A DNA stretch of 64,000 nucleotides. Origin: Aplysia californica. Taxonomy: Eukaryota. The notes under the pieces were generated by a model. It was not told where the DNA came from, did not search any database, and worked only from the letters and a program-made list of their open reading frames with translations. Position numbers and translations under genes: made by a program. This document shows, in pieces, positions 32,387 to 64,000 of the stretch; the stretch's first letter is position 1; each line of letters starts with the position of its first letter. Where the stretch lies: NCBI RefSeq assembly GCF_000002075.1, contig NW_004797276.1, forward strand, positions 2,239,950 through 2,303,949. Reading direction: 5' to 3'.

Positions 32387-32736
32387 CTAAATATCATCAT
32401 CATCATCTGGATCTATTTCTATCAATTCAAAATCATCCGTTTTCATAAAGCTCATGGGTGTGACTTCGTACTTGATATCGGGAGGACTTCCAGGAGGCTG
32501 ACCATTGCCCCCACCCCCGTCCGGAGGCTGGCCACCCCCGTGCCCACTTCCATCACCCGGGTCTCTCGGAACCTGGTCAGTACCAGTGCCATTGTTATCT
32601 CCAAAGGCTCCATGGAAGCCGGGGTGTTGCTGCATGCCCTCCGAGGTGGAGTGCTGGGTGCCCTGGCTGTCATCAGAGGCGAGTTGCTGGTAGTCATAAC
32701 TCTCTTCACCCGGCGCCTGGAGCAAGCTGTCACCTC
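32387..32736 (-). CDS. Last constant coding exon of the cassette-array gene (Gly/Pro/acidic disordered C-terminus)
   Basis: Acceptor ttgtctctcccag, phase 1; GDSLLQAPGEESYDYQQ...DIKYEVTPMSFMKTDDFELIEIDPDDDDDI*. Confidence 0.9.
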
Positions 32737-32769
32737 CTGGGAGAGACAAATGCACAAGTAGTAAGTACC

Positions 32770-33285
32770 CCGCTCGCAACTGCATATGGTCATATGAGCG
32801 CGCGAAACACAAGTTAGTTTTATTCGCAGTTTACTATACGGCTGGACACGGGTCAGTAGTTACATCTTAAAATGTTTAAATATTTTAAATTCGGTGTAAA
32901 TATATACAGCTTTCCTAAATAAAATTTTTTAATAATTCAATTTCACTCTATAATTTCCCATTAAGGCCAATGGCCTTCATAAAATCCAAAATTCTGTTGG
33001 GATCAACGACAGAAAAAATGTCTTGCAATTTTTTGCATTTAAAGTATTTCTTTCGGGTCTCTCTGAAGTCTAGACATTCGGTTAAAATGTGTCCAAAAAG
33101 GTAAAATCTGTGTTGCATCCGAGACAGAACGGCTTCTCTTCTCCCTAAAAGAGGTATTTGTGTGTTAGGGCCGTATGTCCGATGCGTAATCAAGTAAAAA
33201 TAACTTCGTCTCTTCTGGAGAAGCCCGAAGGATTTCGCGGCCCCAGGTTGGGTTTAATGTTGTGTAGTTTATTTCCAATGGCTCT
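32770..33285 (-). mobile_element. Intronic 3' fragment of an I-clade LINE (C-terminal zinc-knuckle region)
   Basis: EVIFT*LRIGHTALTHKYLF...HILTECLDFRETRKKYF...ILDFMKAIGL plus the LINE tail at 32771-32810. Confidence 0.8.
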
Positions 33286-33831
33286 CCCACAGACTGGAAC
33301 CCGACAAGTCAGTGGAGCTTCTTTCTTCTTAGAAATAACAGCGCCTTCAATGAGTGGCCAGCTGAAGGTCTACATATTTAATCTTATCTGATATGCTCCC
33401 TTTTCTTTTGACGTAGTTGAGCACAGATCTCACAAACATAGACAACTCGAAATCATGTACAGTATAGCTCGTACAATTTGACACTCCCCGACTGATATCT
33501 CTTTCATTTTTCACTATCAGTCAACCCGAATTATGGATGTGTCAAACACATTTGTCAATCTCTGACGAGTTATCCATGTCTGACTGTATTTCAATCTGCA
33601 CAGAAGAGAAATTTTGAGATGTTCCGTTTAGATTATTAACAAAACAAAAAAAAGGAGGGAATAGATCTAAATAAGTGAATCTGTCCGTCAGTCACCTTTA
33701 TAAACTCTTTCATGCTTCATTCAATTATGATTACAAAAAGCAATTTTTGACCTTGCTCAAGTAATCTTCCATAATGCACACTGAACAGAAAGGGAAAGTT
33801 ATCCGTATATCCATTTATCAACCAAACAAAC

Positions 33832-33981
33832 CTTCTGATGCCGTTGAGGACATTCTTCTCTCCATGCCAGGATATCCTGGGCTCTGCTGATAAGGGTAGC
33901 CTTGCTGGCTCATGTGAGGGGGAAAGTGTTGGCGGCCAAACTGGGGGCCGCGGGGACTTTGACCGGGGGATTTAAATTGGC
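33832..33981 (-). CDS. Constant exon immediately downstream of the variable array (150 nt, phase 1-1)
   Basis: ttgtgtttcag|GC CAA TTT AAA...GAA G|gtttgt; QFKSPGQSPRGPQFGRQHFPPHMSQQGYPYQQSPGYPGMERRMSSTASE. The phase matches every variable exon and the last exon. Confidence 0.9.
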
Positions 33982-35642
33982 CTGAAACACAAAGAAATAT
34001 CGTCAAACATTTGAAGGAACCACAGCATCACTCCTGTTTCACAAGTGATTTATAGGGTTCTACTCCAGTCCCTACACAAATTCCACTGACCGTTACACCT
34101 TTTTGTTCTAGATCAAAATTTCATGAGCTCTCAACGGGCATAAATATGGGGTGTAATTTCTCAATTCCAAACCCAATTTTAACCAAGTGCACATTGATCT
34201 CTTACATCACATCAGTGGGAACATCAGCAACTTTCTAGAGATTCTTTTGCACTGAAGTAACTATTAAGAAATAACGCAGATTCTTCTTCGGTATAGTATA
34301 GGCTCGGTATCTCTCCCCCATCAATTCACCTTCTATTATGTTCAAATAAAAACCCTGAAGAATTAATCAAATTGGCAATGCCATTTTTGAAGTATTGTTT
34401 AGAAGCACAAGTCTCCCCGTTAGCACCCATAGCTCCCAACAATATGTGAATGGTTGCAAAATCTTTATAAAGAGAACCTGAAAACTACACAAATCTCTAT
34501 TCACATTACCACTTTTGAATTTCAAAAGCCATGCTTCAAAATTTCTCCCAATAAGATAACACCAAACAAAATACTTGATATTTGGACTCAGACTAAGAAA
34601 CATTTGTGAAACAGGAATGAAAGAAAGCAATCAATCTATAACTGTTCCTAACAACAGTACATTACTGGTTTCAAAACTCAGATCATAAAGCCTATAACTG
34701 TTCTCAACAACTGTACATTACTGACATAAAAACTCAGATAACTATGAATGGTCTAACTAAAGACCAAGAAGGTTATCAATCTAATCTGAATGAAATTAGA
34801 GCGATTGAGAAATTTAACAACACAATCATATAAAGGGTATTTACGTCAGCTCAGTGCATAGGTCCTTATCTAAAATAATAATTAAAATAATTACAATAAT
34901 AATAACAAATACAAAGAGCATTGTCTTTTTTGTTGTTTTGATTCACTTCAAAACAATAGAGAACAAACAAAAAAACACAACCATAACAGGATCAAAGTAC
35001 TTGTACAAAGCAGGATCTTTATCAATGTTTTCACACTAAACTGCTTAAAACAAGTAGTATGACCCACCACAAAGAAGATTAATCAGTCGGGGAGTTTTAA
35101 TTCTAAAGGTTTAAGACTCAATATATTCAGTACCATCCTACATATTTGGTTCTCCCATCACAAACCATACATTGTGTGAGTGCAAAAGGTTGGAAAGCTC
35201 AGCACCTACATTATTTAAGTAATCATTGTTCAAAATTAAATTAATTTGGTATCCCCCACAGCGGCCATAGCATTTGTCAGACGGTGGCAGGTACAAGTGG
35301 CAAAATTTATACCAAGTCTTATTTGTTTTATGATTTAGTACGCATTTTGAAGATTAGAGATGTTACAAGAGAGTAACAAATACAAAAAAGGAGGAGAGCA
35401 AAGGACGATAAATGATTGATAAGAAACAAAGAACAAACCACGTCAGAGCAACCACCAACCACCCACACCGAGTCTTAAACCCAGTTAAATAATCTAGCAT
35501 AGCCAGATTAAACTTCCATTGTTTTAGTTTCCAACACTTTTGTTGGAAAAACACAGGCAATCTCCAGCAGAGCTCAGTAGCCCTGTCCACAAACAAGATG
35601 GATGTTTCATAAGTCACCATCTCACACAACAGCACAACTTAC

Positions 35643-35754
35643 TCTGACGAGAAACTTTCTTCTTCTGCATGCATATTCTTGATACAGTATTTGCAGAGAA
35701 AATGCATTTAGTCCGAACGAGCGCCTTTTCTAATATGGGCAACCGCTTAAATAA
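35643..35754 (-). CDS. Variable exon V1
   Basis: CAG/GTAAGT, 112 nt: LFKRLPILEKALVRTKCIFSANTVSRICMQKKKVSRQ. Confidence 0.88.
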
Positions 35755-36161
35755 CTGTCAAATACAAGCATCTGTGTGAGAACAATGCATAGCTCAACAG
35801 GCAGTACACATATCACTTAGCCCTTGATGCATGGTTTGACAAACTTTGGAAAAATCTTAACTTTAAAAAAGATGCCACATAGAGAGAACAGGAATAGGTT
35901 GCTCTACTATATGCAACAGAAAAATGTGTTCATCTTTATAAAACAAGCCATGAACGATGACAAGTCACCACTTGATGAAGCTATGTCCAATAGTCAACAT
36001 CAAACACTGGCCAAAAAGACAATTTCTGGGGCCTCTACAAGTCACTCCAGCAGCAAAAACAAACTTTTACTTTTTGAGAAATAAATTTACAGAAGTCAAC
36101 AAACTACCTTCAATTTGAACCAACTGTAAACAAGGAGTCTGAATGAATGTAACATCATTAC

Positions 36162-36261
36162 CTTTCTTTCGCTCTCGACAAAGTCGCTCACATGCCCTTT
36201 GGCGGAGGAAGTGCATAGTGCGAGCGAGATCATACCTCAGTAATGGGTGACGAGAGATGAG
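36162..36261 (-). CDS. Variable exon V2
   Basis: CAG/GTAATG, 100 nt: LISRHPLLRYDLARTMHFLRQRACERLCRERKK. Confidence 0.88.
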
Positions 36262-36511
36262 CTGAACAAATAAGCAAAATTGTATTCCCACATGTCTGTC
36301 ATACATACCCTTTTTTACTAAACAATTTCGCTCCCTGCTTACAATACACACAATCAATATTTGCCTGGAATATCATGGAGTATCACAAAAGTAGAACAAC
36401 TTTGAACCTCTCAAAATTGCCAATAACCTTAAGAATTTGGTACCTGGAGAAATCCTAGAAAATTACTGACAGGGACAAAAGAGGAATAATAATTCTTACT
36501 AATAAGATCAC

Positions 36512-36626
36512 CTGTAAATTGACACTTTCTATAAGTTCTTCTACTTTTCCGGTCTTTGGCAGTTTTCGCTAAATACCAAGAAGTTGTCTGGGAGCTGTAC
36601 CGCAGCAAAGGCATTCGGGCTACCAT
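36512..36626 (-). CDS. Variable exon V3
   Basis: TAG/GTGATC, 115 nt: MVARMPLLRYSSQTTSWYLAKTAKDRKSRRTYRKCQFT. Confidence 0.85.
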
Positions 36627-37214
36627 CTATTCAATTTCACCCACGAACATGGGGGAAACGGTGGGAAAGAGAAATAGCACTTGAAAAACACCCGAAAAAA
36701 ATTTAGAACAAAATTCACACTTTCTAAATGATTTGGTGCTTGACGTGAGTGGACATTACACTTTCAACCCCAAAAATCTCAACTTTGTTTGGAACATAGA
36801 ACTTGAACAAGAGCCTAAAAAAAACACACAAAAAAAAACCTTGCTTCGCCTCATAGAACTCAGAAATGATTATGGGGTATTGTTGAAAGAAACACAGACA
36901 ACACTGTAACGCACAGTCTGGAGGACACAGCAGGCCCGCAATACCATGAAGAAAAAAAAATAGTGGAAAGGTCTATAATTATTAAATATGCATTTGCTAA
37001 CCATTGCCAAATCCCACGACTCAAGAGGCTTGTGCTGCTTAAAAAAAATAAACAGCTCGACCTACCTATAACAGCCAGATAAAACCATGCAATCCAGCTC
37101 GAAAGTCTAGTGAGCAAACAGTACATCTGACACAACTGATTCAGTCACACACACAATAAAACCTTAATAAAATATAAAATGACTTCATTCACATCTAAAT
37201 AAAACTAGTTTTAC

Positions 37215-37320
37215 CTCTCACACGCTTTGTCCGATTGTAGTGCCTGTCATTTGCATTCTTTACGAATACTTGGCTTAGCCAGGACATATTTTTCTTTAAT
37301 AATGGTATCCGTCTTGTTAA
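37215..37320 (-). CDS. Variable exon V4
   Basis: TAG/GTAAAA, 106 nt: LTRRIPLLKKNMSWLSQVFVKNANDRHYNRTKRVR. Confidence 0.85.
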
Positions 37321-37596
37321 CTATACAAAGAAACAGTCCAAGTTGAAACAAGGTAAAAATACAATGAAAACTGACATTTGAACCCGAAAGACTTTAGGTG
37401 CTGTGACATTTTACCAATAATGCAATATTTCTCAATCTCTTCCAATCAAGTCTCAGATGTTTGCAATTTTGAAAAGCCACTGAATGAGACCTCTCCTCCA
37501 ATGGTTATAATAGCGAACGGTAATTACTGAAACTCGAAACCGGTGTGGTATATCCAAAATATAAAAAATACTTGAGAAAAATCTTTCAAATCTCAC

Positions 37597-37708
37597 CTTG
37601 ACACATAAGTGCCTTTTTATTCTTGCCTCTTCTATCTTTGGCAGTTTTGGCCAAGTACCACTCTGTTACACTGGCCTTGTACTTCAGAAGAGGCAGCCGC
37701 GCTAACAT
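37597..37708 (-). CDS. Variable exon V5
   Basis: CAG/GTGAGA, 112 nt: MLARLPLLKYKASVTEWYLAKTAKDRRGKNKKALMCQ. Confidence 0.88.
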
Positions 37709-38033
37709 CTGAATCATTACTCGGTGACAACATAATTCCCATCAAGAAGGTATGCACTTTAGAGTAGGAATAACCCCATAACCCTTTGACTACTTGGTGA
37801 AAGCTTCAATTTCATGCGTGCAAAAGTACAGCATAAGGGAACCAGATACAATACTAATCTTCAGAAAAAAGACTGTATGACGTTTCAAAATGCAGTCTAG
37901 CTTACACTTAGTTCTTTAACAAGAATGACAGTAACGAACAAGACTACGAAAAGACACAACATTTCGTGGGCTCATATCTTCTTCACACGAAGAATTCTTT
38001 ACTCAAAGAGTATGAACTGGGGTACAGTATTAC

Positions 38034-38133
38034 CTCGTTTACGACCTCTATACAGCCTTTCACATGTGCGCTGACAAAAAACAGCTGAAGTGCGTGTTTG
38101 GTCATACCTCAACAGAGGAACACGCATAAACAA
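38034..38133 (-). CDS. Variable exon V6
   Basis: TAG/GTAATA, 100 nt: LFMRVPLLRYDQTRTSAVFCQRTCERLYRGRKR. Confidence 0.88.
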
Positions 38134-38665
38134 CTACACCGGAGGGAAAAAACCAAAACAAGACAAACTCATTATGTTTCACACAATTGGACACTGCATC
38201 AATTTTCATTTTCTTCATAGAGTGTCATCACATATCTTCCCAGGAAGGTAAGCCCCTACCACATGCTTGTGATTTTGATGCTTTGATAGAATACTACGGA
38301 TTCATAGACACATAGCTACTTACGGCTGGAAATTCCCTATCGAAAAGATTTTACCAGCACCCGACATATTTCTTAAAATGGGCATATCACAGAAAAATTG
38401 TGTGTGTGTGTGCGTATGTGTGCGTGCATGTTTGTGTCCCCCCTCTCCCAAATCAGTGGGCTAACCAAAAACCCCCGAATTCAAGATCAAGAACAAAACC
38501 CATCTGCAAGCGACAAGAAGCAACAGAATGAACTCACCAACCCGTTAAAAAATATGAATGCAGCTTTGACACACCTCATACCAGACAAAGTCAGTAAACA
38601 TTGCAGGGGAGGGAAAGGTCTTAAAGAGACCTGAAACTTGTCCCACAATTAAAGATGCTGCTCAC

Positions 38666-38771
38666 CTTTGGAATAATAAACCTTTCTACTCTTTCTGTCA
38701 CTGGCTGTTTTGGCCAAGTACCACACTGCTCGGTGCACACTGTACTTCAAGATAGGTGTGCGCAACAACAC
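38666..38771 (-). CDS. Variable exon V7
   Basis: CAG/GTGAGC, 106 nt: VLLRTPILKYSVHRAVWYLAKTASDRKSRKVYYSK. Confidence 0.88.
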
Positions 38772-39131
38772 CTGGCTCACAGCAAAGACAATTTACAGAG
38801 ACTCCAGTATATTATACTTTACAATCATTAAGAGAAAGCCCAGTTACTTTTATTAATCCAAAAGGAAATCCCTGCTAAACAAAGTGAGGATCAAACTGTG
38901 GTGCAACAGATGGCCAGGAAGTACCTAGCACCTCAAGGAAAGAGAAACATCAAAACTTCTCCTTTAAAGTACCAGTTCATTATAAACAATAGAAAGTAGA
39001 AACAAGACAAGACTCGAAAGACAAAAGCAGAAAAAACTGCCACGGTCCTGAGACCAACTTTCTTACATTCTTAAACACCCCTGGAAGTAAAAATCGCTGA
39101 CTCAACAAATGGACCCAGTTGAACCACTCAC

Positions 39132-39249
39132 CTGCAAATTGTCTTCGCCTTCTGTGAGTCATTTCATACCTTCTGTGCTTTGCATTAATAGCCATGGTGG
39201 TCTCCAGACGCCTTACATTGTACCTTAACAAAGGCATACTCCTGACCAG
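39132..39249 (-). CDS. Variable exon V8
   Basis: CAG/GTGAGT, 118 nt: LVRSMPLLRYNVRRLETTMAINAKHRRYEMTHRRRRQFA. Confidence 0.88.
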
Positions 39250-40011
39250 CTGCAAAAATGTATCCTCTTATTCTATTACCCTTTAGACCAATGTCTAAAA
39301 GAAGACATTTTTTGTTCCATTTATTTACTCCCTTGACTTAAATAAAAATGACCAAGTAATGCCACTTGCCCGTCTTTCCTATTCTTAAAGAACAACATTG
39401 TAACACTTCAGTTCTGGATATTTCTAGACTAAAAGGCCATTTACACAACACCTAGCACTATATAGACCCAAGGAAAGCCAAACAAGAAAAACTAAATCAA
39501 GACCGGCTATTGGCTACCACTCCCTGTTTTTCAAAGTGTTATTACTTAGTCTCTTCCAACAATCCAAAAGAAAAGTCCATGCAAGGCAAAACCAAAGACA
39601 ATAGGTAGAGCCAATCAGAAAATATGACCATGTGAACAGGACCAGGGAAGCCTCTAAAAAAGTAATATTCAAATTGTACTTGTTATCGACCATCGCGCAT
39701 TGTAGTACATACTGAGAATTTGAGTATAAAAGTGCATTCTGAACACAAACTTTCCAGTCGTTGAAAGTCGAAGAACTGACACAAAGCAAACAGTAAAAAG
39801 CTGAATATTACCTTTGAAGATAGTAAGCATCTATAAGGAAAAAAAACCCAGCAGTTTCCATGGACAGAGAAACCAATGACAGAGACAGATCATATTCACA
39901 AAATTCTAACGGTTGAAAGGCAAGGACAAAGACAACAACACCACCATCATAACATCAACAATGATTGTTTCGGACACCAAGTACCGTTCTCAAAATCATG
40001 TGAACATGTAC

Positions 40012-40126
40012 CTCGGAGGCTTGGTCTGCAAGCTTTTCTACTGTATCTTCTGTCACTTGCATTTTTCGCAAGCATATATTGCAGTCGAAACATGCTAGCA
40101 CTCAACACAGGTATTCGTCTGATCAA
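40012..40126 (-). CDS. Variable exon V9
   Basis: CAG/GTACAT, 115 nt: LIRRIPVLSASMFRLQYMLAKNASDRRYSRKACRPSLR. Confidence 0.83.
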
Positions 40127-40242
40127 CTGTTGATGAGACACAGTAAACATAAATGTTGTCTGTGCTTGAAAAATGCCTTCGCTAACAAAGAAATTTACTC
40201 CAAACAGATGTTACCTCTTCATAGTTATTTAAAGGTACAAAC

Positions 40243-40354
40243 CTCTTGCTTTCAAACGGCGTGTCGAATCTGCTTTACGGTCACGAACACTTTTAGCAAG
40301 ATAGCCACTTACGAAAGGGATGTTAAGTCTAAGAACAGGAAATCTTAATAACAT
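40243..40354 (-). CDS. Variable exon V10
   Basis: CAG/GTTTGT, 112 nt: MLLRFPVLRLNIPFVSGYLAKSVRDRKADSTRRLKAR. Confidence 0.85.
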
Positions 40355-40529
40355 CTGAAAATGTATTTGTCGAATTAGGATGAGAACAAATTTATACCAA
40401 AGTCTTGAAAAATAAGAGCTCATTGCCTGGCACCTGGAGGTATCTGGTGAAACAACTCAAAAGTCACACGGAAGTGCATTTCATATTTTAGCCTCAGAAT
40501 TTATACTGACAGTTATTTTCTAAACTGAC

Positions 40530-40635
40530 CTTTCAAACGTCGAGCTAGATTTGCCCTCCTGTCCTGCGCAGTTTTAAGCAAATAAAAACTTGACAATTTC
40601 ACATTAAATTTCAGCAACGGCAGTCTTGAGACCAG
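40530..40635 (-). CDS. Variable exon V11
   Basis: CAG/GTCAGT, 106 nt: LVSRLPLLKFNVKLSSFYLLKTAQDRRANLARRLK. Confidence 0.88.
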
Positions 40636-41024
40636 CTGTCAAAACGAAAATAAAAAATATGAAAAAATAAAATTCTGCAGGATACACCCAAGTTTGCAGA
40701 CATTCATGCCAAGAGCATTTCTGAACAACAGTTGGTGCCTCAAGGCAAAATTTTATCTTGGATGTAATCAAAACATGACTGCCACTTCTCAGAGAGTAGA
40801 GACAAGAAGTCAAAAAGTGATATGAATACCGAGGATCCAAAAATGACAAGCTGATCAGCATAATTAGATAAAAAATAATAACCAGAAATAATTTTTTTTA
40901 AAAACTGCCTAGGGAGATCAAGACAATTCTACCATCCATACCACCAAATGGAACCATTATATATCTACTCAAGGTGCCAGAAGGAACCATGGACACAGAA
41001 AACTTCATACGGCCTTTTACCTAC

Positions 41025-41127
41025 CTTGATTTCTGCGGCTGTAACTACTTCGCCGTGCTGTCCTCACTCGAAGCATCCAACTGACATAATTTACATTGGC
41101 ACGCAGAACTGGTAACCGACGCAACAA
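41025..41127 (-). CDS. Variable exon V12
   Basis: CAG/GTAGGT, 103 nt: LLRRLPVLRANVNYVSWMLRVRTARRSSYSRRNQ. Confidence 0.88.
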
Positions 41128-41539
41128 CTGTGGCAACGTGATACACAAGAAAAATTCCTAATTCTATCCCATAAGTCAACTTACATTAAAAAAACAGGCA
41201 CTTTCTCAATCCCGTGCCAGCAGTGAAACTAGATGTGCTCGAGGGCCAGCAGTTAGTGAACTTTTGTAATGTCCAAACCAAAGAGACTTTTCAGCTTCTG
41301 CAGGACTCACCATCTGATCTTTTGTTATTGAGGAACTGAACAAAACTCTCTGAACCTTGACCTCCAAATATAAAAGTTAACCGCGCACGGTCAAAGGAGG
41401 TGAAAGAAATATTTTGAACCCTGAAAGTTTTGAAAATACACTTACAACCATTTTCTCTTTGTTTACAACATGCCAAAGCAGATCACTGGGAGATCACAAT
41501 ACATGACATACAGGGATTACCCCAGGGCTTTTTACATAC

Positions 41540-41642
41540 CTCGATTTCTGCGGTTGTAATTAGTTCGCCAGGCGGTCCTTACTCGAAGCAAATAACTCAC
41601 ATGTTCCACATTTGCACGAAGAAGTGGTAACCGTCTCAACAA
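41540..41642 (-). CDS. Variable exon V13 (close paralog of V12)
   Basis: CAG/GTATGT, 103 nt: LLRRLPLLRANVEHVSYLLRVRTAWRTNYNRRNR. Confidence 0.88.
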
Positions 41643-42107
41643 CTGACAACGCAATTCATAAGGTTTTTAATTGTTGCTTAGGTTTTACCAAGCTTCATTA
41701 TCCTTAAAAAATCTGTTTCATATGAAGGTGCTAGCAGTGAAACAATTCCTTAGCTCAGCAACCAACAGACACATGAACATGGACAAAATTAATATTTCTA
41801 GTTACTTTGATAGAGAAAGCACATTTTAACTCAGCCATACTGTTACAAGAAAAACTTAAGAGCTTTTACAAGACATTGGCTGACCCGACAGAAAAACCAG
41901 GATAAATTCCAAGAAGATATTTATCAGTGAATTTCATGTTTTGATGCGGCTCACTTATTAAAAACTTCCCAAGACAGAAACTAACATTTCGTCTCATCAG
42001 AGGAAAAGGTCCTTAATGTATTTCTAAAAATATGAAAAACACCCACAAGAAAAAAATTTAAGGATCATGCACCCAAAAAGTGTTGTGGCTGTAGCGAAAT
42101 CACAAAC

Positions 42108-52130: not shown

Positions 52131-52215
52131 CTGAACAGAGACGTAAAATTACAGTTACAAATTGAAATGGGATGGCTTGGCCAAAAGGTAATAAAATAAT
52201 ATCAGCATGACATAC

Positions 52216-54148: not shown

Positions 54149-54415
54149 CTGTCAAATATCGGGCAAAAATAAACTTAACAAATCCATGATTAACTTTTAA
54201 GTGTTCATGAAGAGCCAATTCATTATGGTGCAAACAGGAACTTCAAATATTAAGACAGAGCACATTTCACAATCATCCCACAACAAAGCAGGCTGGATAA
54301 GGTCTTCAGATAGACAAAATACAAAACAAAAGAAAAAAGCTCTCACTCCTTGAAATCTCTTGTCTATAAAACAATAGAAAACTTCCAGATCAAAAGTTCT
54401 CCCGACAAAACTTAC

Positions 54416-54527
54416 TGCTTAATCGTTGGCGGTGGAGCTTCACATGTCGTCTCGTCATGGCATTTTTATTCAAATATAAGGCCACCTTATCGAGCTGTCT
54501 TGTCAACTCAGGCATTCGCTTCAGTAA
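54416..54527 (-). CDS. Variable exon V34
   Basis: CAG/GTAAGT, 112 nt: LLKRMPELTRQLDKVALYLNKNAMTRRHVKLHRQRLS. Confidence 0.88.
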
Positions 54528-54641
54528 CTGACAATCAAAAGAGTAAAATTCTACAGGATAGCACTGATGCAGCACATGAGCCCTTTTGGCAGTTGGCAAG
54601 CAGTTAAAAACAAAAGAGCACAACCTTACAAGTCCACTTAC

Positions 54642-54753
54642 GAGATGCCTTAGAGTTGTAAGTGCGGGAAGTTCTCCTGGACATGACACTGCGGTACAAA
54701 TACTGAGCAGCAGAAGACGCATCTGCTCCAAGGACAGGCATTCTGCCAAGAAG
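54642..54753 (-). CDS. Variable exon V35
   Basis: TAG/GTAAGT, 112 nt: LLGRMPVLGADASSAAQYLYRSVMSRRTSRTYNSKAS. Confidence 0.88.
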
Positions 54754-55627
54754 CTAATCAGAACGCAATTCAAGCACTTTAAGGAAAAATGTTAATACCA
54801 ACAGAGGAAAAGAGCCTTGCCAGGTGTGAAAGAAACTATGCCCGGGACAGAAAAATAACAGACATAACATGCACCCTCACATCATCTGAGCAGCAAAGTG
54901 AGAACTATGCTAACCAAAAAGAACCTGCCACTTCGACCCCTAGCGATTGACAGTCTCCTTGTTATGCCTAAGAAGACAACATTCAATGATTGAAAAACTT
55001 ATTCCGAACAAAGGCAATTTATATCCGAACGTTTACCAAAAAAGCAATAAATAAGGTTATGTTGAAACCATAAATTCAGAAACAGGGGCTCACGAAAGTG
55101 TATTTTAGAACTGAACAGTTCATACACAGACAATGACAAGGAGCTGGGAAAAGCAAGACCAGAAACAAAAAACCTGACAAGGAACGATATAAGATGATCA
55201 GTGTGCCACCTCCACATGTGTTCCCATTAATGAGGGCAGACAAAAGTCGTGAGGTACAACTACAAAAGGTGTCTTCTCCAGTCTTTTTAAATCTTTGGCA
55301 CAGTCCATTCAGACGACATAATCTTTCCATTCAATCATTTAATTCCTCAGACTTTCGAAATGTAAGAGCACTAATCAGGCCATCATATCACAAGACATCG
55401 GTTATCCAGAATACAGAAACGATGTCAAAGATTGTTGCAGACGACAACAGCAAGGCTTTGTTAATGAAAAAACCCATACTACCATAATTTAAAATCAAGA
55501 ACTAATTTTCTAATAATTTGACCCTGTGCAAGCCCAATGAGTAGAGAAACATCTTCCCAGCCCTCACCCTTCTAGAAAACAGGCAAACACATGACCTGAT
55601 ATTCAGCACCTGGAGTGCAGTACTTAC

Positions 55628-55748
55628 CATACATTTTGTTAAGTCGATCTCGGAAGAAACGTTGGCATCTACGTGACTTGGAACTTTGATGAAAGTAATT
55701 TGCCACACGAAGTATATCACACCCCATTATTGGCAGACGACTTACCAG
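55628..55748 (-). CDS. Variable exon V36
   Basis: CAG/GTAAGT, 121 nt: LVSRLPIMGCDILRVANYFHQSSKSRRCQRFFRDRLNKMY. Confidence 0.88.
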
Positions 55749-56462
55749 CTGAGAAGAAAATACTCCAGCTAAAATGTGATAACGGCTACCCCAGACAATA
55801 AAAAAGGTCGAGTAAAAAATATATAGACATAGCTACATAATTCTCTACAACTAAAACCACTTTCCAAACCAGAGCATGATAAAACAGTCAAGCACTAAAA
55901 GAAGTATGAAAGAAGACATAAGATTTGGTAAAGATGAGACAAGACACTGAAAGTGTCCAAAGAGCCCAACAAATCAATGCCTTTCTTTGTGGCAAGGACA
56001 AGTACATATTAAGTCATACTGAGAAAGAATCCAAACTCTATCCAAGCATGAAACAAAACTGAAATGGTCCATAAAGACAAAAATAATACGACAACCTTAA
56101 TGGAAGTAGACAAAAGTGGCAAAAAATATCACTAATCCAAATCAAATTACTCAAATCACAATCTTCAAAGAAACAGCCTTTAACAGGTACTTCAAGGCCA
56201 AACAAGTTTGTTGACAAATATTCAAAAACTGACCACACCTTTCATTTGACACTGCAATAATTCAATAGCTTTCCTACAAGTTTTTCACGACACCATGCCT
56301 CACAAACAAAAGGAAAAGCAAAACATTCCACAACGAGCCAGGTGGGAATTCATTAACATCCCAGTCTGACAGTAACTTCATAATCTCAAAAACACTTGCC
56401 CCACACATTCACCAGCCACTGATGCACACTCTTTCTTACGATTTCATTTGAAAAGCACTTAC

Positions 56463-56568
56463 TTCTTAACCGAAACGATCGCATTAAGCGCCTAGCTTTA
56501 CTGTTATGACAAAGAAGGCGCCCAGCTGTGACAGGATTCAGATTCAGGATTGGTAACCGTTTTAGAAG
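56463..56568 (-). CDS. Variable exon V37
   Basis: TAG/GTAAGT, 106 nt: LLKRLPILNLNPVTAGRLLCHNSKARRLMRSFRLR. Confidence 0.88.
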
Positions 56569-57024
56569 CTAAAACAGGCCAAAAAAAAAGAGGTAAAACA
56601 AAATCAATCTCTATATCAGCTGACCTTTCCATCGACATCTTTCAATGAAATTTCCACAATGAACATTAAAACAACGATAAAGAAAAGCCTAATGTACTAG
56701 AAAATACAATGAAAAAAGCATGGCCATCTTGACTTGGTGAGGTGAACAGAAACCTCCAAAGTAGAAACTTCCATCCAGGACGTATTTTCTATAAGACATG
56801 AAAAGAGCCAATAGGAGGAATCAGTGAAGTGGGACTATTTGTTACTTACTCTGTACAATTGTACTAAGGTTAATTTCTATCACTACTTAAGAGACACAAA
56901 AAATGGTATTGGTTCTGTACTCACAAGACAACTTACGATTTCTGTCACTGACTCAATAAACTACAAACATAAACAAAAGACCTAAACACTAGTCAGCAAA
57001 ATGCTGTACATACGAAGTACTTAC

Positions 57025-57136
57025 TGCTACATTTGAGTCGCCAGTTTCTCATGGTATTTTTTGACATACACCTACGATAAAGAAGATCCATTGTTCTATG
57101 AAAATTTCTCTTCAATACAGGCAGCCTGGAGAAAAG
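57025..57136 (-). CDS. Variable exon V38
   Basis: CAG/GTAAGT, 112 nt: LFSRLPVLKRNFHRTMDLLYRRCMSKNTMRNWRLKCS. Confidence 0.88.
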
Positions 57137-57434
57137 CTGATGACAAAGAACTAATTCTTAAGTTGTATACACCCAAATTGCACCAATAACAATGAACAGT
57201 AAGCAAACTAATGACAGAGCCTTTTTGGAATTGTTGCAGGCAACAAGTAACATCATGAGACAAGTGCTGCATTATATCATCAGCTGAAATCACCTATTAC
57301 AAGGAGTACACCAAAGATGCTTTACAGGTCGACTCTTAACAACAACACAGATGATCTACTTGCTCCTATCAGGAACAGACAGATATTAAATGCACAGGCT
57401 GCCAACGTCCAAATAAACCTTAAAATGTACTCAC

Positions 57435-57543
57435 TAGACTTTTTTAATTTCTTGGCATATAAGACACGTGAGCGAGAGTTTTGATAAAGGCAATTTTCCA
57501 CCCAAGCTGGAGCTGCTCTCAGAACAGGGAGACGTCTCAGAAG
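57435..57543 (-). CDS. Variable exon V39
   Basis: TAG/GTGAGT, 109 nt: LLRRLPVLRAAPAWVENCLYQNSRSRVLYAKKLKKS. Confidence 0.88.
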
Positions 57544-57712
57544 CTACAAGTGAAAGAAAATACAAATCACTGGGACACTGACATTCTCCTTAAGGACTCG
57601 CCCTTCGCTGAAGATGGTGTGTGGCCTCCTAATGCCATGCTTATTTAGAACACAAAGGTAAACCCAGAATAGCAGTATCCTTAGATGGACATATTCTTTT
57701 TTTTTCACTTAC

Positions 57713-57830
57713 TGCTTTTGAGATTTCGACACCGCTTGCTCCTCATGTAAACTTTATTGCGAGAATTTGTGTACATAAGATGCTCAGCCCGATCATAATC
57801 CATCAGAAGGCACGGCAAACGTTTAAACAG
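57713..57830 (-). CDS. Variable exon V40
   Basis: CAG/GTAAGT, 118 nt: LFKRLPCLLMDYDRAEHLMYTNSRNKVYMRSKRCRNLKS. Confidence 0.88.
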
Positions 57831-58482
57831 CTGAAGTGAAAGACAAACACGACCTTGTATCTATATTGACCAACTCTATGGTGCTATGGTGACGAAAAAT
57901 TACCCTTCAATGCCTTTCTCAAGCAGGGAAGACTGCCGTAAATCGTAAAAGAAATTGGTCCAAAGTACTTAACATTCACATACATGTGCATTTTTAGGAT
58001 GGCTGTACGCATTATCACACATGAGAACAAGACTAAACCCAGAATAAGAAAAGCGACTACAAAAGACAACCAACTTCTATTTAGAGTCTAATATGAAAAC
58101 AAGACAAGAAAAACAGAACAAAACTTGACTTCTCTTGTTCAAAGTACAAAAACAAAAAATTGATCAGGTAAAAAAGACATTCACAAAATAAAACACAAAA
58201 ACTACTGGCTTTCGTAAAACAACTCCCTTACATCCAATAAATGTACGTGCATGCAGGTGCAATGTACCTTTTGAACTCTTTGGTAAATTTCTGCTCCACA
58301 CATTATGAGGCCCTACACTCGCGGTTATTCAAAACAATGGAATCATGTCCATTTTTTCTTTTGTACTGACCCAGGTATGTTTCTCAATTCCCCCCTTGGA
58401 AAACCTATATTTCAACAGAAGCTGCTGTAAAAAGATGGTCATATATTACTACTGAGTCTGAGCCTTGTAGGAACCAACTTAC

Positions 58483-58603
58483 TTCTTTGTTGAGCTTGAG
58501 CTAAGCGCTTAGACCTCATGTGCATCTTGATCCGACAATTGGTATACAAAACTTCTGATGTTCTGATGATGTCATGAGATAAGATTGGCAGCCTGGCCAG
58601 TAG
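58483..58603 (-). CDS. Variable exon V41
   Basis: TAG/GTAAGT, 121 nt: LLARLPILSHDIIRTSEVLYTNCRIKMHMRSKRLAQAQQR. Confidence 0.88.
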
Positions 58604-58678
58604 CTAGGATTCAGAAAATGAACACATAAGGACTTCGAACTTGTGTGAAATTTGTATTGTGAGTCAAATGTTTCTCAC

Positions 58679-58787
58679 CTGCATTTTTTGTTCTGGATCT
58701 CATATAGATCTTGTGGTAGGTTTTTTTGTGCAAAAGAAACTCAGCTCTGCCTCTGTTTTGTTTCAATATTGGCAAACGACGAAACAA
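58679..58787 (-). CDS. Variable exon V42
   Basis: CAG/GTGAGA, 109 nt: LFRRLPILKQNRGRAEFLLHKKTYHKIYMRSRTKNA. Confidence 0.88.
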
Positions 58788-59156
58788 CTGATGTTTGAGA
58801 GAAAAACGAAGTAAATTTGAGGTAGACAGACTAACTACAACTAACAAAACACAAAAAATGTCAATCAACACCATGTCCGCACCTTACTTCATTTTCTTTG
58901 ACAGTCTTGAACCATTATATGCCAATTCTACTCGAGTTTTACACACAGACACCATTACCTCTTTTCTCTAACAACTCCGTCAATTGATCAAACAAACCAG
59001 CCACTGCATTTCCAGCAAGCAATAGAGCTCAAAAACACTTAAAACACACAGTCAGTTCTTTTTAGAGTTTTGGTTGAAATCCATTACATCTAAACTCTCT
59101 AAGAAACTAATGGATTCTCTTCTACATAGTACAAAACTAGTTTACCAAGGACATAC

Positions 59157-59268
59157 CTCTAACTATTTGACGAGACTGTCTGCGCCTCATTTTCTCGTAA
59201 CAGTTTATACGCATAATGCACTCAGTTTTTCCAACATTACCCATCAAGATGGGCAACCGATGAAACAA
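59157..59268 (-). CDS. Variable exon V43
   Basis: CAG/GTATGT, 112 nt: LFHRLPILMGNVGKTECIMRINCYEKMRRRQSRQIVR. Confidence 0.88.
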
Positions 59269-59609
59269 CTGAAGAGGAAAGGATGGGAGGAGAAAGAATA
59301 ATTGTCATAAACATCTTGTCCTACTGCTCCGTAACAAACCAAGTGTGAGCCCTGATGACCCTTTAAAATGTGTGGTTTCTTTAGTTTCTTCGAAGATATC
59401 AGCCAGTTAACCTAATCCTTTTCACTGAACAAAACAGAAAGTACCGTCCATTTTTTCTTACATCTGAAGCAACCTTCACTTAAACCTATCAATATCTGGA
59501 ACCTACTCCATACCTAAAGGACAAAACTTTTCCTGAAAAGATCACCAACAGAACTACCTCAACATCAGATGATACATTTACTGAGAGAAGCCAACAGAAA
59601 ACACAATCA

Positions 59610-59694
59610 TCAGTTTACAAGAACTTGCTCTTGACTAGTATTTGAAAAGAAGACAAGGTACATTTTTTTTTAAAATTGGGAGTACTTTAAATAA
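59610..59694 (-). pseudogene. Probable pseudo-exon (acceptor lost, internal stop)
   Basis: LFKVLPILKKNVPCLLFKY*SRASS, preceded by ttttgtcc instead of AG. Confidence 0.5.
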
Positions 59695-59968
59695 GGACAA
59701 AACCGTGACTGAACAAGATCTACAGAACGAACTGAATGGACCGTACCACCAAATGAAGCAAGTAAACACGGTCACCTGATACCCGTTACATAAAATATCA
59801 GCATCAGTAACATCCAAACAATTTTAGGAAATCCATATCGGTCCCACTATTTTTGGCTCACTAACTACCCCATCCATATTATGCAGTTCAGCACTTTGGT
59901 AACTGACTTGTAGACTACTTTTTTAACAATTGAGTGTCAAAACGGACGAACTAATAAAAAAAATATAC

Positions 59969-60074
59969 CATCAAACTTCATCCTCCATCTCGAAACCCTT
60001 TTCTTTCCATTTGTGTAAAGAATTTCAGTACATCTCTCTCGCCAGGCAGCAAGAATTGGAATGCGCCGCAAAAG
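59969..60074 (-). CDS. Variable exon V44
   Basis: TAG/GTATAT, 106 nt: LLRRIPILAAWRERCTEILYTNGKKRVSRWRMKFD. Confidence 0.86.
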
Positions 60075-60517
60075 CTAGGAATGGACAGAATAACAAATTT
60101 AGGGGGAAATGACACAGTTAACCACCATCTTACACTGTAGTTGCCTGTCCCGGTCCCTGTACATTCTCCTCATGCTGTTTATATAAAAATTGTCCACAAC
60201 TGATGAGCACCTTGCTTGCAATATTGGCATTCGCCTAAATAGCTGAGATACAATGAAGGATACACTTTAAAAGAGTGTGCGTTTGATACTAGCCCTTCTG
60301 AAGTTGTTGCACTATCGTCACCACTAGCATAAAGAGCACTCACTAGCATAAAGAGCACAAATAAAAGCTTTTGCATCTCCAATCTGTCTGATAACTATTT
60401 TCTACAAGTTAGAAAGGACCTTAAAAATTGATCTACAAAAATTGTCTGTGGCACACCTTGCTATTTTAGGTTTTAAAAAACTAGAAACTGCTTGATCAAC
60501 ATTCAGTGGTGACTTAC

Positions 60518-60614
60518 CCTGTTTCTGCCTTTGCACTCTCCTCATACAGTTAACATACAAGTATTGCTGTGTGCGTTCTATGCTGTACTGAAGAACGGGC
60601 AAGCGACTAACCAT
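60518..60614 (-). CDS. Variable exon V45
   Basis: CAG/GTAAGT, 97 nt: MVSRLPVLQYSIERTQQYLYVNCMRRVQRQKQ. Confidence 0.88.
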
Positions 60615-60855
60615 CTGGAGTATAGTTGCATTGGTAAAATATTTCAGACTGACCATGCGGAACAATAGCTGAAGTCAGTTTACTCCAAATCATACAGTAC
60701 TGTGGCGAGCGAGTTAGGAATTCAGTATTATCAAAACCTGAAGCCCCATAGTTAGCATGCACTGTTTTATTAGTCAACATTTGCTATTTATCAGCTCAAA
60801 AAGATTTCATTTCACCAATATATCACTGAGTAAATACTACACACTACGTACTTAC

Positions 60856-60967
60856 TTTTGTAAGTTGCCCTCAGGCGTCTTTTTTGCATTTTCCGAGTTG
60901 CATTAATATAGAAAGTCTCCAGTGCTCTTTTGCGGTGGTATGTGAGGACAGGCATACGGAGGAAAAG
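60856..60967 (-). CDS. Variable exon V46
   Basis: CAG/GTAAGT, 112 nt: LFLRMPVLTYHRKRALETFYINATRKMQKRRLRATYK. Confidence 0.88.
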
Positions 60968-61208
60968 CTGGCATTTTGAAAGTAAGTTGGAGGTGACAAC
61001 AAAGAGAATTACAGTAAAAGTAGAGAATTGATCTACAGGAACAACTTGGTCACAATTTCATAGAAAACAGCACCTGAGCTTAACTTCAAGTTTGCAATCC
61101 CTTCCATCGTTTCCACTCACTACATAAAAGTTCCGACTCAAAAACAACAAGAATAGTGGGGCAATTCAAACTTTCATGTGACAGTCAACAGCTGTTTAGC
61201 GTACTTAC

Positions 61209-61335
61209 GGTCTTTCATCATCATTGCATGAGTCCTGGTCTGCCTCCACCTGCGAGAGTTTCTACCTGCCCTCTCGTTGAACATATGCTCTACTCTAAGG
61301 GCATCCTCTCGCAACAAAGGCAAGCGGCCGAAAAG
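61209..61335 (-). CDS. Variable exon V47
   Basis: CAG/GTAAGT, 127 nt: LFGRLPLLREDALRVEHMFNERAGRNSRRWRQTRTHAMMMKD. Confidence 0.88.
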
Positions 61336-61477
61336 CTGAACAGAACGAGAATGAACATTCACTAAGCTCTCCCAGAGTTTACTTCTCGCTGTAATCCCTT
61401 ACACGGGAACCACAGTGAACTCAACAAAAAGAGAACCTTGCCAAAACTGAGATCACTGTGCTTATTCTTTTACTTAC

Positions 61478-61595
61478 TCCACTGAGCTGCAGACTTGTTC
61501 ATCCGCTGAAGCTGATTTCTCTTCCTTGCATTGACATACATTACTTCTTGAGCACGAAGCGCACTGCAGCGAAGTTGAGGCATTCTATTAAATAA
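61478..61595 (-). CDS. Variable exon V48
   Basis: CAG/GTAAGT, 118 nt: LFNRMPQLRCSALRAQEVMYVNARKRNQLQRMNKSAAQW. Confidence 0.88.
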
Positions 61596-61752
61596 CTGGG
61601 ATCACAAAGGAGGGGAAAAATCAGTCTCTTCAAAAATGTTCGGAATTCAAGGGTTACCTCAGAGATAGATCACCCTCAACTTGAACTATAAGATGCAAAT
61701 GCAAACAGCAGCATCTCAGGATGTAAATCAAAGACAAACGATAGAAACTCAC

Positions 61753-61870
61753 TGAAACCAATATCTTTTTGTCTACAGCGCCTCACTGACATCTTCTTCA
61801 TGCTGTTTGCATAGAACAGTGCCTCTGTCCGCAGCGAGTTTTGAGCAAGAACAGGTATTCGTAGATACAA
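61753..61870 (-). CDS. Variable exon V49
   Basis: CAG/GTGAGT, 118 nt: LYLRIPVLAQNSLRTEALFYANSMKKMSVRRCRQKDIGF. Confidence 0.88.
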
Positions 61871-62344
61871 CTGTGCAACACGAAAGATCATGATTATCCA
61901 GAGAAGACAAAACACAGATGGAAGTATGAAGTAAGATCGTCATTCAAACTATACAAGGATTTCCCTCATTTACAGTTTAGTGTTGTGGTCTCAGCCACAG
62001 CCACAATCTATAATATATTTTGGTCCAAGTACAAAAAAATATTTTTGTCTGTCTCTTTTTCTTCATCAATGGTTTTTCGTCCTGGGTTTTATTCTTAAAT
62101 TATCTGTTTGTTCTCCAGCCTGAACCCAGCACACTTTATTCGTGTGGTTGAAACAGGCATATATATCAGTACTTCTTTACTGTTTACACATGTCGTACTG
62201 AGTAAAATTACCAGGAGAACTTTCCCCTGTCCAAGTATATTTTGAAACTTTCAAGCTAAAATTTGTATGCTAAGGCATACCAGTGAAAAGTGGCATACAG
62301 TATTATCTCTGAAATTTCTCTCGATCTCCATCTGCAGCCTGTCA

Positions 62345-62412
62345 GTTTCAGCGCATTGAGCACTTTTTTGTGGAAATGCGCTATATAAATGCAATTTATT
62401 ATTATTATTATT
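62345..62412 (+). mobile_element. Short L2-type retroposon 3' tail inside an array intron
   Basis: cagcgcattgagcac...gcgctatataaatgcaatt(tat)n, similar to 960-1045. Confidence 0.55.
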
Positions 62413-62975
62413 CTCTTCCAGGAACTCTTTTCATTCTTTGTCTACATTGACCATGCACACAACCACGCCCTCTTTTAGCACTAGCCAGCCCTCTGATTCT
62501 TTGTGGAAGTACTTAGCTGAAGAAGTAATAACTAACTTTCACCCTGAATGAGAATCTGTGTGTCAATTGCATAAATGTCATCAGAATCATGGCACTATTT
62601 CCCAGAGCTTTTACATTATTTCAATCCATAAAAAACTCATTTAACACCTCTCAGCTGTGTAAGATTTCTTTGCCATCATTCATAATATTAAAATCAACTG
62701 ACCTACATTCGAATGAGAACCATTACGGTTTGAATTGAGCATTAGATTATTATCTTAGAGTTCTCTCTTCGACATTACTTTAGCGAGGGAAATCATTGAG
62801 ATAAAATAGCACAATTAATCTATTTGCAGTATCAATTCAAATAGGGAATCCCTATATGTTGGCAGCTGGAGATGAATCGTGAGCACAAAAATTCCTGTGC
62901 GTGGTACCAAATGTGTGAATCGCTGGCCAAAACAACTATTAGAGAGTAAATCAGTCTATTTCATAAACAACTCAC

Positions 62976-63081
62976 TTTTGTCCCTGCAGCGTCTGTATGA
63001 CAACTTTGCTGAGCAGTTCTTAATAAAATACAAGCTCGCACGCTTATAACAGCTACTGAGAATAGGCATCCGTGAAAATAT
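62976..63081 (-). CDS. Variable exon V50
   Basis: CAG/GTGAGT, 106 nt: IFSRMPILSSCYKRASLYFIKNCSAKLSYRRCRDK. Confidence 0.88.
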
Positions 63082-64000
63082 CTGTGAATATTTTCATCAA
63101 ACTTTTCTCATTGATTGTAAACCAAAGCAATTTCAAGGTGCTGCGACTTGACAATGCATTTCTAATAAGTCAAAACCTAACAAAGAAAAAGTTAAAAAAC
63201 AAACTTAAGGAGATATTCAGTGTCCATTCATAGCCTCCCTTTATCATTTCTTTTTCAGTCTCCATGCATGACCTACATTCAACTCTGTAAGAAAAGAAAG
63301 CACTGGAGTGCAGATCTACACCAGTATGTTTAGCAGTGGTTCAACAGAAGTATGGAAGGTCTTGGCAACAGAAGAGGCAATTTGAGATTGATTTAACTAG
63401 CCAAGTCAGCAGGACCCACGGTGGCAGGAAAGAAAAAAAAAAGAATGCCTTAAGGGTACACTTTGTCAGTCACCTGCTTTTTAAGCAATATAACCATACC
63501 TTTTTTAGTCTACCCCTTGGCTGTAAGGGACACAAAAAAGCCGTGTGGCACCATGGAGGACCTACTAACAACAACCTACTTCGTTATGAACAATGCCATT
63601 TTCACCAATCTCTCAACAACAACAAAAATCCACATTAACAACTGAGATCCAGTCAGAAGCCACCAAAAAAATATTGAATGATAAATCAACAGCAATGAAT
63701 AAAAAGCCCCATTACCCAGAAAACCTAGGGTAGTTATCTTCAGTTAAAAGTCAGTATGCTGGCATCACTCTCACAATTTGTCATTAAAATATCAAACGTG
63801 TCAATATAAGCATAAATATGCTTTGCAAAATACTTCAAAAGAACTTAAATGTCAGGAACTGCAACCAGAATACAAACAATTGGACAATGAACAAGACACA
63901 ACTTAACCTCAGTCGCCCTCACCAGAACTGGGAGCTAACAAACCAACGCTCTGTACACCCTTCCACGACTAGGGAGGGGTCTTTGAAATTATTGATATAA

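Follow-up and report, generated by a model that had tools for sequence, protein, structure and literature searches.

How does a gene that holds some fifty homologous exons in tandem place one of them in each mRNA? This question is raised by a 64,000-nt stretch of the Aplysia californica genome, hereafter the window (G000:C6:2239950-2303949 of a 927-Mb genome), which has about 38% guanine plus cytosine and 1182 N. Its minus strand contains the variable exons, here called cassettes, of LOC101860137, a gene that RefSeq lists as "uncharacterized protein" with at least 33 isoforms of 553-563 aa. The isoform cluster was found by a word-indexed search with the Lymnaea orthologue as query. We consider it probable that these exons are a variable cluster from which one cassette enters each mRNA, that the choice is controlled by reading frame together with pairing between a docking element and selectors, and that the cassette acts as a recognition helix. 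Coordinates refer to the window unless called extended, which means the window plus 80 kb upstream, 144 kb in total.

A motif scan of the minus strand revealed a dense run of open segments that begin with (Q)L-x-x-R-h-P-h-L and continue in a basic stretch. When an AG right before the first codon, a stop-free frame and a phase 1 GT at 85-140 nt were required, 48 cassettes were obtained. A profile hidden Markov model (HMM) built from them and run on all six frames of the 144 kb recovered the 48 training cassettes (E 1e-7 to 1e-14) and added three intact ones in which one motif position is occupied by Q, S or A (E 6e-7 to 3e-6). Beyond these 51, no match in the 144 kb was better than E 0.5, and none on the plus strand was better than E 1.3. 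The 51 intact cassettes, V1-V51, run over about 27.4 kb (Table 1). All are preceded by AG, mostly behind a pyrimidine tract, are stop-free and end at a GT in phase 1. Their lengths are 97-127 nt, 1 mod 3 in 51 of 51, and they encode 32-42 residues; the introns between them measure 59-1105 nt, with a median of 379. They form a tandem set of homologous exons of similar length and the same phases (0 in, 1 out).

An earlier reading of the window, made from its letters only (the sequence-only reading), had claimed at least 50 intact AG...GT cassettes of 97-127 nt, free of stops, with a common L-x-x-R-h-P-h-L motif and phase 1 ends that splice in frame to a constant exon at 33981; count, size range, acceptor and phases agree with what was found here. 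It was also right that no upstream constant exon is visible inside the window, but not in its expectation that the array continues past 64000. The profile HMM detected no cassette past 63081 in the 80 kb added there, and exon C, the constant exon ahead of V1, lies about 5 kb past the window end and about 6 kb upstream of V1.

Four inter-cassette introns are just 59-85 nt long: V7/V8 (59969-60134), V27/V28 (49330-49500), V10/V11 (58483-58679) and V22/V23 (52031-52216). Two recent duplicate pairs, V34/V35 (76% identical, the closest pair of the array) and V39/V40, occupy 45013-45996 and 41025-41642, and a DNA profile revealed one additional, frameshifted dead copy. These duplicates and the dead copy fit birth-and-death turnover inside an otherwise old array.

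The constant exons ahead of the array lie on the minus strand of G000:C6 at 2,315,519-2,308,986, outside the window. Exon C ends in phase 0, each cassette leads from phase 0 to phase 1, and the 33981 exon and the terminal exon continue in phase 1. All 15 Aplysia isoforms inspected contained exactly one cassette between ...DKALAE and QFKSPGQ, joined to the 33981 exon, and all 15 cassettes were distinct. Fourteen matched the genomic list exactly; the fifteenth used an alternative donor of V22. Models were also inspected in Biomphalaria glabrata (LOC106053932, at least 43 isoforms, 15 models), Physella acuta (LOC131934887, at least 49 isoforms, 15 models) and Bradybaena similaris (two loci with clusters of 27 and 9 member sequences, 22 models). 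The 67 models from the four heterobranch species had one cassette each, with inserts of 31-48 aa that were all distinct within a species, and none had V exons in series. A 2047-nt contig (L010), assembled from a public sequencing run on another species, encodes a complete 545-aa orthologue with a single cassette. At the level of public models, each mature mRNA contains exactly one array exon, as the sequence-only reading had proposed for one gene with 50 or more isoforms. LOC101860137 thus has the capacity for no fewer than 51 proteins, distinguished from one another by a single module of 32-42 residues.

Exons were joined and translated locally to follow the frame when the cluster is skipped or two adjacent cassettes are included. 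Skipping placed a stop codon 81 nt ahead of the last exon junction, and adjacent double inclusion produced a stop more than 50 nt before that junction in 50 of 50 pairs. Because every cassette is 1 mod 3, zero or two cassettes shift the frame and lead to a premature stop and a non-functional product. These results show that the reading frame enforces the one-cassette count. Frameshifted skip forms exist, namely Biomphalaria isoform X43 and transcript P0162. Two transcripts of other species, P0001 and P0152, run from exon C directly into the intron, reading ALAE and then VC...; the occurrence of this junction in several assembled transcripts indicates that splicing often leaves the large docking intron in place or takes it out slowly.

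A search for orthologous arrays, a check proposed with the sequence-only reading, returned 55 intact cassettes and one without a donor over about 26 kb in Lymnaea stagnalis (L011), and at least 40 cassettes in Biomphalaria (L015). The many isoform models in Physella and Bradybaena imply orthologous arrays there too. Reciprocal-best comparison gave 33 cassette pairs for Aplysia and Lymnaea (Spearman order 0.992), 18 for Aplysia and Biomphalaria (0.996) and 36 for Lymnaea and Biomphalaria (1.0), with 16 orthogroups consistent in all three. The median identity of orthologous cassettes was 51-72%, with V5 as the upper extreme (Table 1), against 27% for paralogous cassettes within Aplysia. Since orthology holds cassette by cassette and the order is collinear, the array and the identities of its cassettes predate the split between sea hare and pulmonates and have been under selection.

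The intron between exon C and V1 contains a block of about 360 nt conserved between Aplysia and Lymnaea (E 7e-39, extended 64780-64418), with near-identical sub-blocks. We slid 28-nt windows of this block against the flanks of every cassette, and a single window stood out, with a median of -21.0 kcal/mol for upstream flanks versus -18.2 for downstream flanks. The putative docking element is the 33-mer AGAGCCCTTTTGATTTTGGTGCTGTGGTGAAAC at L002:690-722 (-), equal to G000:C6:2304639-2304671 and outside the window. It sits in an intron module of about 330 nt present in three species (L002:400-800 (-), L011:34340-34730 and L015:28895-29290). The 33-mer has one and the same sequence in Aplysia, Lymnaea and Biomphalaria, occurs once per locus, and lies 1.2-1.6 kb upstream of the first cassette in the three species (about 1.6 kb in Aplysia). 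In the 144 kb it is unique at up to 6 substitutions, and the surrounding 231-nt stretch has no second copy in the Aplysia genome. The intron behind the upstream constant exon thus contains one highly conserved element.

Pairing was assessed by taking the best duplex of the 33-mer with up to 300 nt upstream of each cassette and comparing it with docks shuffled so as to preserve dinucleotides. The median was -24.1 kcal/mol in Aplysia (shuffles -19.5±0.7, z -6.7), -24.5 kcal/mol in Lymnaea (shuffles -18.1±0.7, z -8.5) and -24.6 kcal/mol in Biomphalaria (shuffles -17.7±0.8, z -8.2), and no shuffle matched these values. Upstream introns at or below -20 kcal/mol numbered 37 of 51, 46 of 55 and 33 of 40, respectively. 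Exact 9-mer Watson-Crick complements were present in 8/51 upstream introns of Aplysia (1.2 expected from shuffles, same-sense control 4), 22/55 of Lymnaea (expected 2.0, control 0) and 15/40 of Biomphalaria (expected 1.4, control 1). Candidate selectors at or below -20 kcal/mol end at a median of 75 nt before the acceptor in Aplysia and 55 nt in Lymnaea. Examples are GTCACAGCACCTAAAGTC (V48), AAGCACCAAATCA (V49) and ...CAAAAGGGCTC (V18), which are predicted to pair with overlapping parts of the 33-mer. An exact k-mer search of the Aplysia introns for a common selector word returned T-rich low-complexity words only, indicating that the selectors are degenerate. Rfam gave a chance-level match only to the conserved intron block (E 0.55). 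Complementary segments thus precede most of the variable exons, though not four Aplysia cassettes discussed below, and the data strongly suggest pairing between docking element and selectors as in exon 6 of Dscam1.

The pre-mRNA, transcribed from the minus strand, runs from the constant exons through the 5955-nt intron into the 51 cassettes, then into the 33981-33832 exon and the terminal exon. Control would have two layers. The first is shown by the translations: the frame turns messages with zero or two cassettes into messages with a premature stop. In the second, proposed from sequence statistics and conservation, the single 33-nt element would base-pair with a selector that precedes most cassettes, usually at a distance of 20-250 nt. 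The element can be occupied by just one selector at a time, and, if Dscam1 exon 6 is a guide, the cassette immediately downstream would then be activated. If the variable helix recognises DNA or RNA targets, one regulator might in this way obtain some 50 specificities.

AlphaFold predicted most of the full protein with low confidence, and it looks disordered. For a domain of about 95 residues, taken from transcript L010 and modelled with an alignment of 71 homologues, the mean predicted local distance difference test score was 79.7, with helices at 5-15, 20-35, 41-57, 60-63 and 65-89. In this model the cassette contributes the last turns of the third helix, an invariant proline, a short turn and the entire final helix. 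In heterobranch snails the constant portion of the domain, L307-E357 in isoform X8, does not vary, with 68 proteins compared. Among 146 cassettes of the three species, positions 1, 2, 4-8, 14, 18, 19 and 26 are conserved (L, h, R, h, P, h, L, R, h, h, R/K), positions 3, 9-13, 16-17, 21, 24-25 and most of the basic tail are highly variable, and the net charge is +4 to +11.

A HMMER search with the first coding exon found 315 relatives. The N-terminal domain of about 90 residues defines a family in which the hits that could be named were all from gastropods. Its other members reach tens of isoforms by switching between 3' exons that encode C2H2, FLYWCH, BED or psq/CENP-B modules. Because the paralogues carry zinc-finger, FLYWCH, BED or psq modules, a role in nucleic-acid recognition can be proposed for the cassettes. 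The position and charge of the variable helix make DNA or RNA its most likely target, and from the comparison with the paralogues the protein is presumably nuclear.

Two named domains were considered and found no support. A homeodomain had been suggested by an hFxxNxxR look; there was no Pfam match, no homeodomain among the structural neighbours, and the upstream exon (RNMREAH...ALAE) misfits the assumed spacing. A BEN domain had been suggested by a TGK...LD...fP...basic helix pattern. PF10523 gave no hit at E of 10 or below on the proteins or the domain, and a scan of the genome with PF10523 misses the locus. Foldseek and VIA returned no BEN structure. These tests for BEN are weak, with a domain split over three exons and a model that is not compact.

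The results that weigh against our interpretation concern first the role of the module. Pfam reported no family at E of 10 or below for 68 orthologues taken as whole proteins, and neither the PDB sequence profile nor ESM Atlas, Foldseek or VIA identified the domain, the best Z being 4.8 and the matches helical hairpins only. An appreciable though minor likelihood accordingly attaches to a variable basic helix that does not read DNA, and instead gives specificity to protein-protein contacts or homodimers, binds RNA, or directs the protein within the nucleus as an arginine-rich motif or nuclear or nucleolar signal. The elongated helical hairpin of the model, its weak structural neighbours (mostly oligomerisation or coiled-coil modules, Z of 4.8 or less), the lack of a match to any DNA-binding family and the strong positive charge are all in keeping with this. 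A localisation signal, however, would need no set of about 50 individually conserved, collinear variants, and the paralogues have DNA-binding modules at the same position of the protein.

Others concern the pairing. The three-species comparison yielded no covariation support for the docking pairs, because every pair that involves the 33-mer is invariant. The signal in Aplysia is below that of the two pond snails and modest for exact matches. No good selector was found for V8, V23, V28 and V43, whose upstream introns are 59-116 nt long, and that of V11 is marginal (-18.4 kcal/mol). Cassettes behind the introns of 59-85 nt may rely on the selector of the neighbour, or a steric bar may keep the two neighbours from being spliced together. 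In the consensus fold, the 33-mer pairs locally, as a hairpin, with a conserved and selector-like block upstream of it (ACCATGCATTCAATGAAACAAGAG); again all pairs are invariant. A second conserved selector-like word (CTGAGCACCT) is located about 170 nt downstream of the 33-mer. Hairpin and word possibly reflect a closed state with a regulatory role, or competition for the docking site; the hairpin could also mean nothing.

These observations bring up an alternative in which exclusivity comes from frame and mRNA decay only, helped locally by introns too short to splice, with the 33-nt element as a protein-bound splicing enhancer or another regulatory RNA. The frame by itself does remove zero- and two-cassette products, and the four shortest introns, like the hairpin, would suit such an arrangement. 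We regard it as improbable. The complementarity between the element and the upstream introns goes far past composition-matched shuffles in three species, and in the pond snails the same-sense control finds almost nothing where complementary 9-mers are frequent. Moreover, most transcripts of a 51-exon cluster would be wasted if the frame acted alone.

The remaining points concern expression. In three 2026 poly(A) RNA-seq runs mapped to 33800-39799 the gene was near-silent, with a constant-exon depth of 0.5 or less and zero junctions, and a fourth, contig run behaved like DNA there. The evidence for one cassette per mRNA consists of RefSeq and GenBank models plus a single assembled transcript, which comes from another species; 15 of 33 Aplysia models were inspected, and that isoform cluster can represent no more than 33 of the 51 cassettes. 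That most cassettes are annotation extrapolations or decaying duplicates and few are truly spliced, for which the silent runs, the dead copy and this ceiling might speak, is nonetheless very improbable, as 51/51 are still open, bounded by AG and GT and 1 mod 3 long, cassette orthology and order are kept across lineages, which is unexpected for unused exons, and four other species were annotated independently with 27-49 isoforms each. The sole deep signal in the mapped interval was a repeat of about 40 nt at 35349-35390, with hundreds of RNA reads and very high contig depth. Its reads continue into poly(A) or unrelated sequence, and it is probably the end of an abundant SINE-like (short interspersed nuclear element) sequence that does not belong to the gene.

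If one cassette per mRNA under joint control of frame and docking pairing is accepted, the closest known system is exon 6 of Dscam1 with its 48 variants. In both, dozens of tandem homologous internal exons are used one per mRNA, a single conserved docking element follows the upstream constant exon and has complements before the variable exons, and individual variants are kept as orthologues over long divergence. In terms of sequence, the cluster agrees with Dscam1 exon 6 in every feature that we tested. There are also differences. The variants of Dscam1 encode half an extracellular immunoglobulin domain; here they encode a basic alpha-helix of an uncharacterised, probably nuclear protein, from an unrelated gene and in Mollusca. 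Dscam1 has three or four clusters and LOC101860137 has one. Its exon length of 1 mod 3 lets the frame add to exclusivity, unlike in Dscam1. For Dscam1 the repressor hrp36 is known; LOC101860137 has no known counterpart, and the pairing proposed here is predicted from sequence. The docking-site/selector architecture of Dscam1 exon 6 was reportedly set out by Graveley in 2005. In that exon the docking site follows exon 5 and a selector precedes each variant (PMC3535345, PMC4691838). Competing RNA pairings also pick one of several duplicated exons in Drosophila 14-3-3 zeta, Mhc, MRP and srp and in human ATE1 (PMC4691838, PMC6071210, PMC7797038). These small docking/selector clusters have 2-8 exons each, compared with 51 in LOC101860137.

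Other multi-isoform genes differ more. lola and mod(mdg4) combine a constant BTB part with many alternative 3' zinc-finger or FLYWCH exons, and the gastropod family seems to serve a like end, many recognition modules on one constant body. A BTB factor of that type was rejected for LOC101860137, which has no BTB/POZ domain (no Pfam match, 68 orthologues) and whose variable unit is internal, between constant exons. The sequence-only reading had set lola apart by its alternative 3' exons. That distinction holds for this gene, yet the kinship is closer than it supposed, as the gastropod paralogues are built much like lola and mod(mdg4), a disordered linker joining the conserved N-terminal domain to any one of tens of alternative 3' C2H2, FLYWCH or BED exons. 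Clustered protocadherins and the chelicerate sDscam genes likewise derive about 50 isoforms of one protein from about 50 tandem variable units; those units are alternative first exons with their own promoters, and the cassettes here are internal exons with acceptor and donor behind common upstream exons.

Full-text literature searches brought up no publication about this gene, nor about a large mutually exclusive cluster in any mollusc. This bears out the sequence-only reading, which knew of no such cluster described, for the literature but not for the gene catalogues, as the isoforms are already public, unnamed, in RefSeq. The mechanism and the scale are known; new are the phylum, the gene and the class of protein, and in particular the proposed docking-site/selector layout with its three-species 33-nt element. 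To our knowledge, very large mutually exclusive clusters, and docking/selector control at that scale, are essentially confined to arthropod Dscam1. Our wider proposal, held tentatively and somewhat short of the balance of probability, is that heterobranchs independently evolved Dscam-scale docking/selector splicing that swaps the recognition helix of a nuclear regulator and provides about 50 conserved DNA or RNA specificities, in the largest mutually exclusive cluster outside arthropod Dscam and the first such in Lophotrochozoa. If true, this molluscan case, unrelated to the arthropod one and apparently convergent with it, would offer an independent system for the choice of one exon in about 50, and the strategy would serve to diversify an intracellular, probably nucleic-acid-binding protein too. 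It would also delineate, in gastropods, a family of regulators that have many isoforms and share an uncharacterised N-terminal domain, parallel to insect lola and mod(mdg4). The short, perfectly conserved element and the compact 27-kb cluster are of practical appeal. Aplysia and Lymnaea are classic models of neurobiology, and the question arises whether isoform choice is stochastic or follows cell type, for example among their neurons.

Table 1. Features of LOC101860137, in window coordinates unless marked as extended.
Feature	Coordinates	Strand	Basis or remark
First coding exon, start MDFDSSSKF	extended 75570-74808	-	
Exon A	extended 72360-72208	-	
Exon B (GLTRAQQEELEMYYRKGTDQHLTFL)	extended 70784-70711	-	
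Exon C (RNMREAHAMYPFTGKRDKELFDKALAE), ends ...DKALAE, phase 0 end	extended 69117-69037 = G000:C6:2308986-2309066	-	
In-window portion of the 5955-nt intron (exon C to V1)	63082..64000	-	
Whole cluster V1-V51	35643..63081	-	motif/splice scan and profile HMM
V1, first cassette (IFSRMPILSSCYKRASLYFIKNCSAKLSYRRCRDK)	62976..63081	-	orthologue of first Lymnaea cassette
V5, best conserved cassette, 32/34 residues as in Lymnaea	60856..60967	-	in RefSeq isoform X6
Candidate selector of V7	60290..60321	-	-30.5 kcal/mol
Candidate selector of V9	59346..59377	-	-30.1 kcal/mol
Candidate selector of V13	57599..57626	-	-30.7 kcal/mol
Candidate selector of V18	54577..54612	-	-29.7 kcal/mol
V18	54416..54527	-	in RefSeq isoform X8 (XP_005089527.1)
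V23 (FFRRMPLAGY...), intact	52031..52130	-	profile only
V25 (LFHQLPVISL...), intact	50948..51053	-	profile only
Dead frameshifted cassette, V34-V36 subfamily	44465..44522	-	DNA profile
Candidate selector of V40	41195..41230	-	-29.0 kcal/mol
V44 (LVRSMPLLRY...), intact	39132..39249	-	profile only
Candidate selector of V46	38249..38292	-	-31.2 kcal/mol
Candidate selector of V48 (GTCACAGCACCTAAAGTC...)	37379..37407	-	58 nt upstream of acceptor, -33.4 kcal/mol
V51, last cassette	35643..35754	-	in RefSeq isoform X11
Constant exon after cluster (xQFKSPGQSPRG...STASE), phase 1 in and out	33832..33981	-	in all inspected isoforms
Terminal coding exon (GGDSLLQ...ELIEIDPDDDDDI), stop codon 32389-32387	32387..32736	-	C-terminus of RefSeq isoform P0157

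The upstream neighbour of LOC101860137 is a paralogue whose N-terminal domain is 87% identical (N-terminal exon G000:C6:2399519-2399788). It has more than 25 separate minus-strand zinc-finger exons at extended 99.6-144 kb (L005-L009; G000:C6 about 2,339,500-2,383,900), each of which encodes a zinc-finger pair of the form CPVxxC...HWxEKHE...C..C...H...H, and together they make a lola-like alternative 3' set. On the other side, the last coding exon of a further family member, LOC101859451 (P0098), with a serine/arginine-rich repetitive tail, is located at 2924-3751 (+). A family match at G000:C6:2198522-2198740 (+) probably represents the N-terminal exon of LOC101859451. LOC101859451 and LOC101860137 are paralogues that converge tail to tail.

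Transcript P0297, from two other public runs, has an N-terminus nearest to a Littorina member of the family. Behind a constant region common to zinc-finger isoforms it contains a module homologous to that of LOC101860137 (...FLRVMREAHQLFPFTGKKD...VLKQLPMLMTRRAQMENIFYTSTMSRIAKQRKKKQ...). A search for further caenogastropod copies of the module returned the query itself only. It is reasonable to suppose that the module began as one alternative C-terminal module of a lola-like gene, acquired its own paralogue in heterobranchs, and had its last exon amplified about 50-fold.

In the Lymnaea assembly (L011:59248-59736, 62892-63247) the QFKSPGQ exon sits before the last five cassettes. A copy of the upstream flank of this exon and its first 25 nt, 98.9-100% identical, ends at a single N at 63248 of L011. 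The Lymnaea exon has probably been misplaced by an error of assembly at this spot, given that in Biomphalaria and Aplysia it follows the last cassette. Elsewhere in the window, open frames of about 80-90 aa (MLFLFFFWKNERELQNRLQRH..., MIVHNKMVHSAKKVSAGS...) lie on both strands round a run of N at 19317-19933 and recur 5 kb off at 24592-24920; they are a repeated element in inverted copies.

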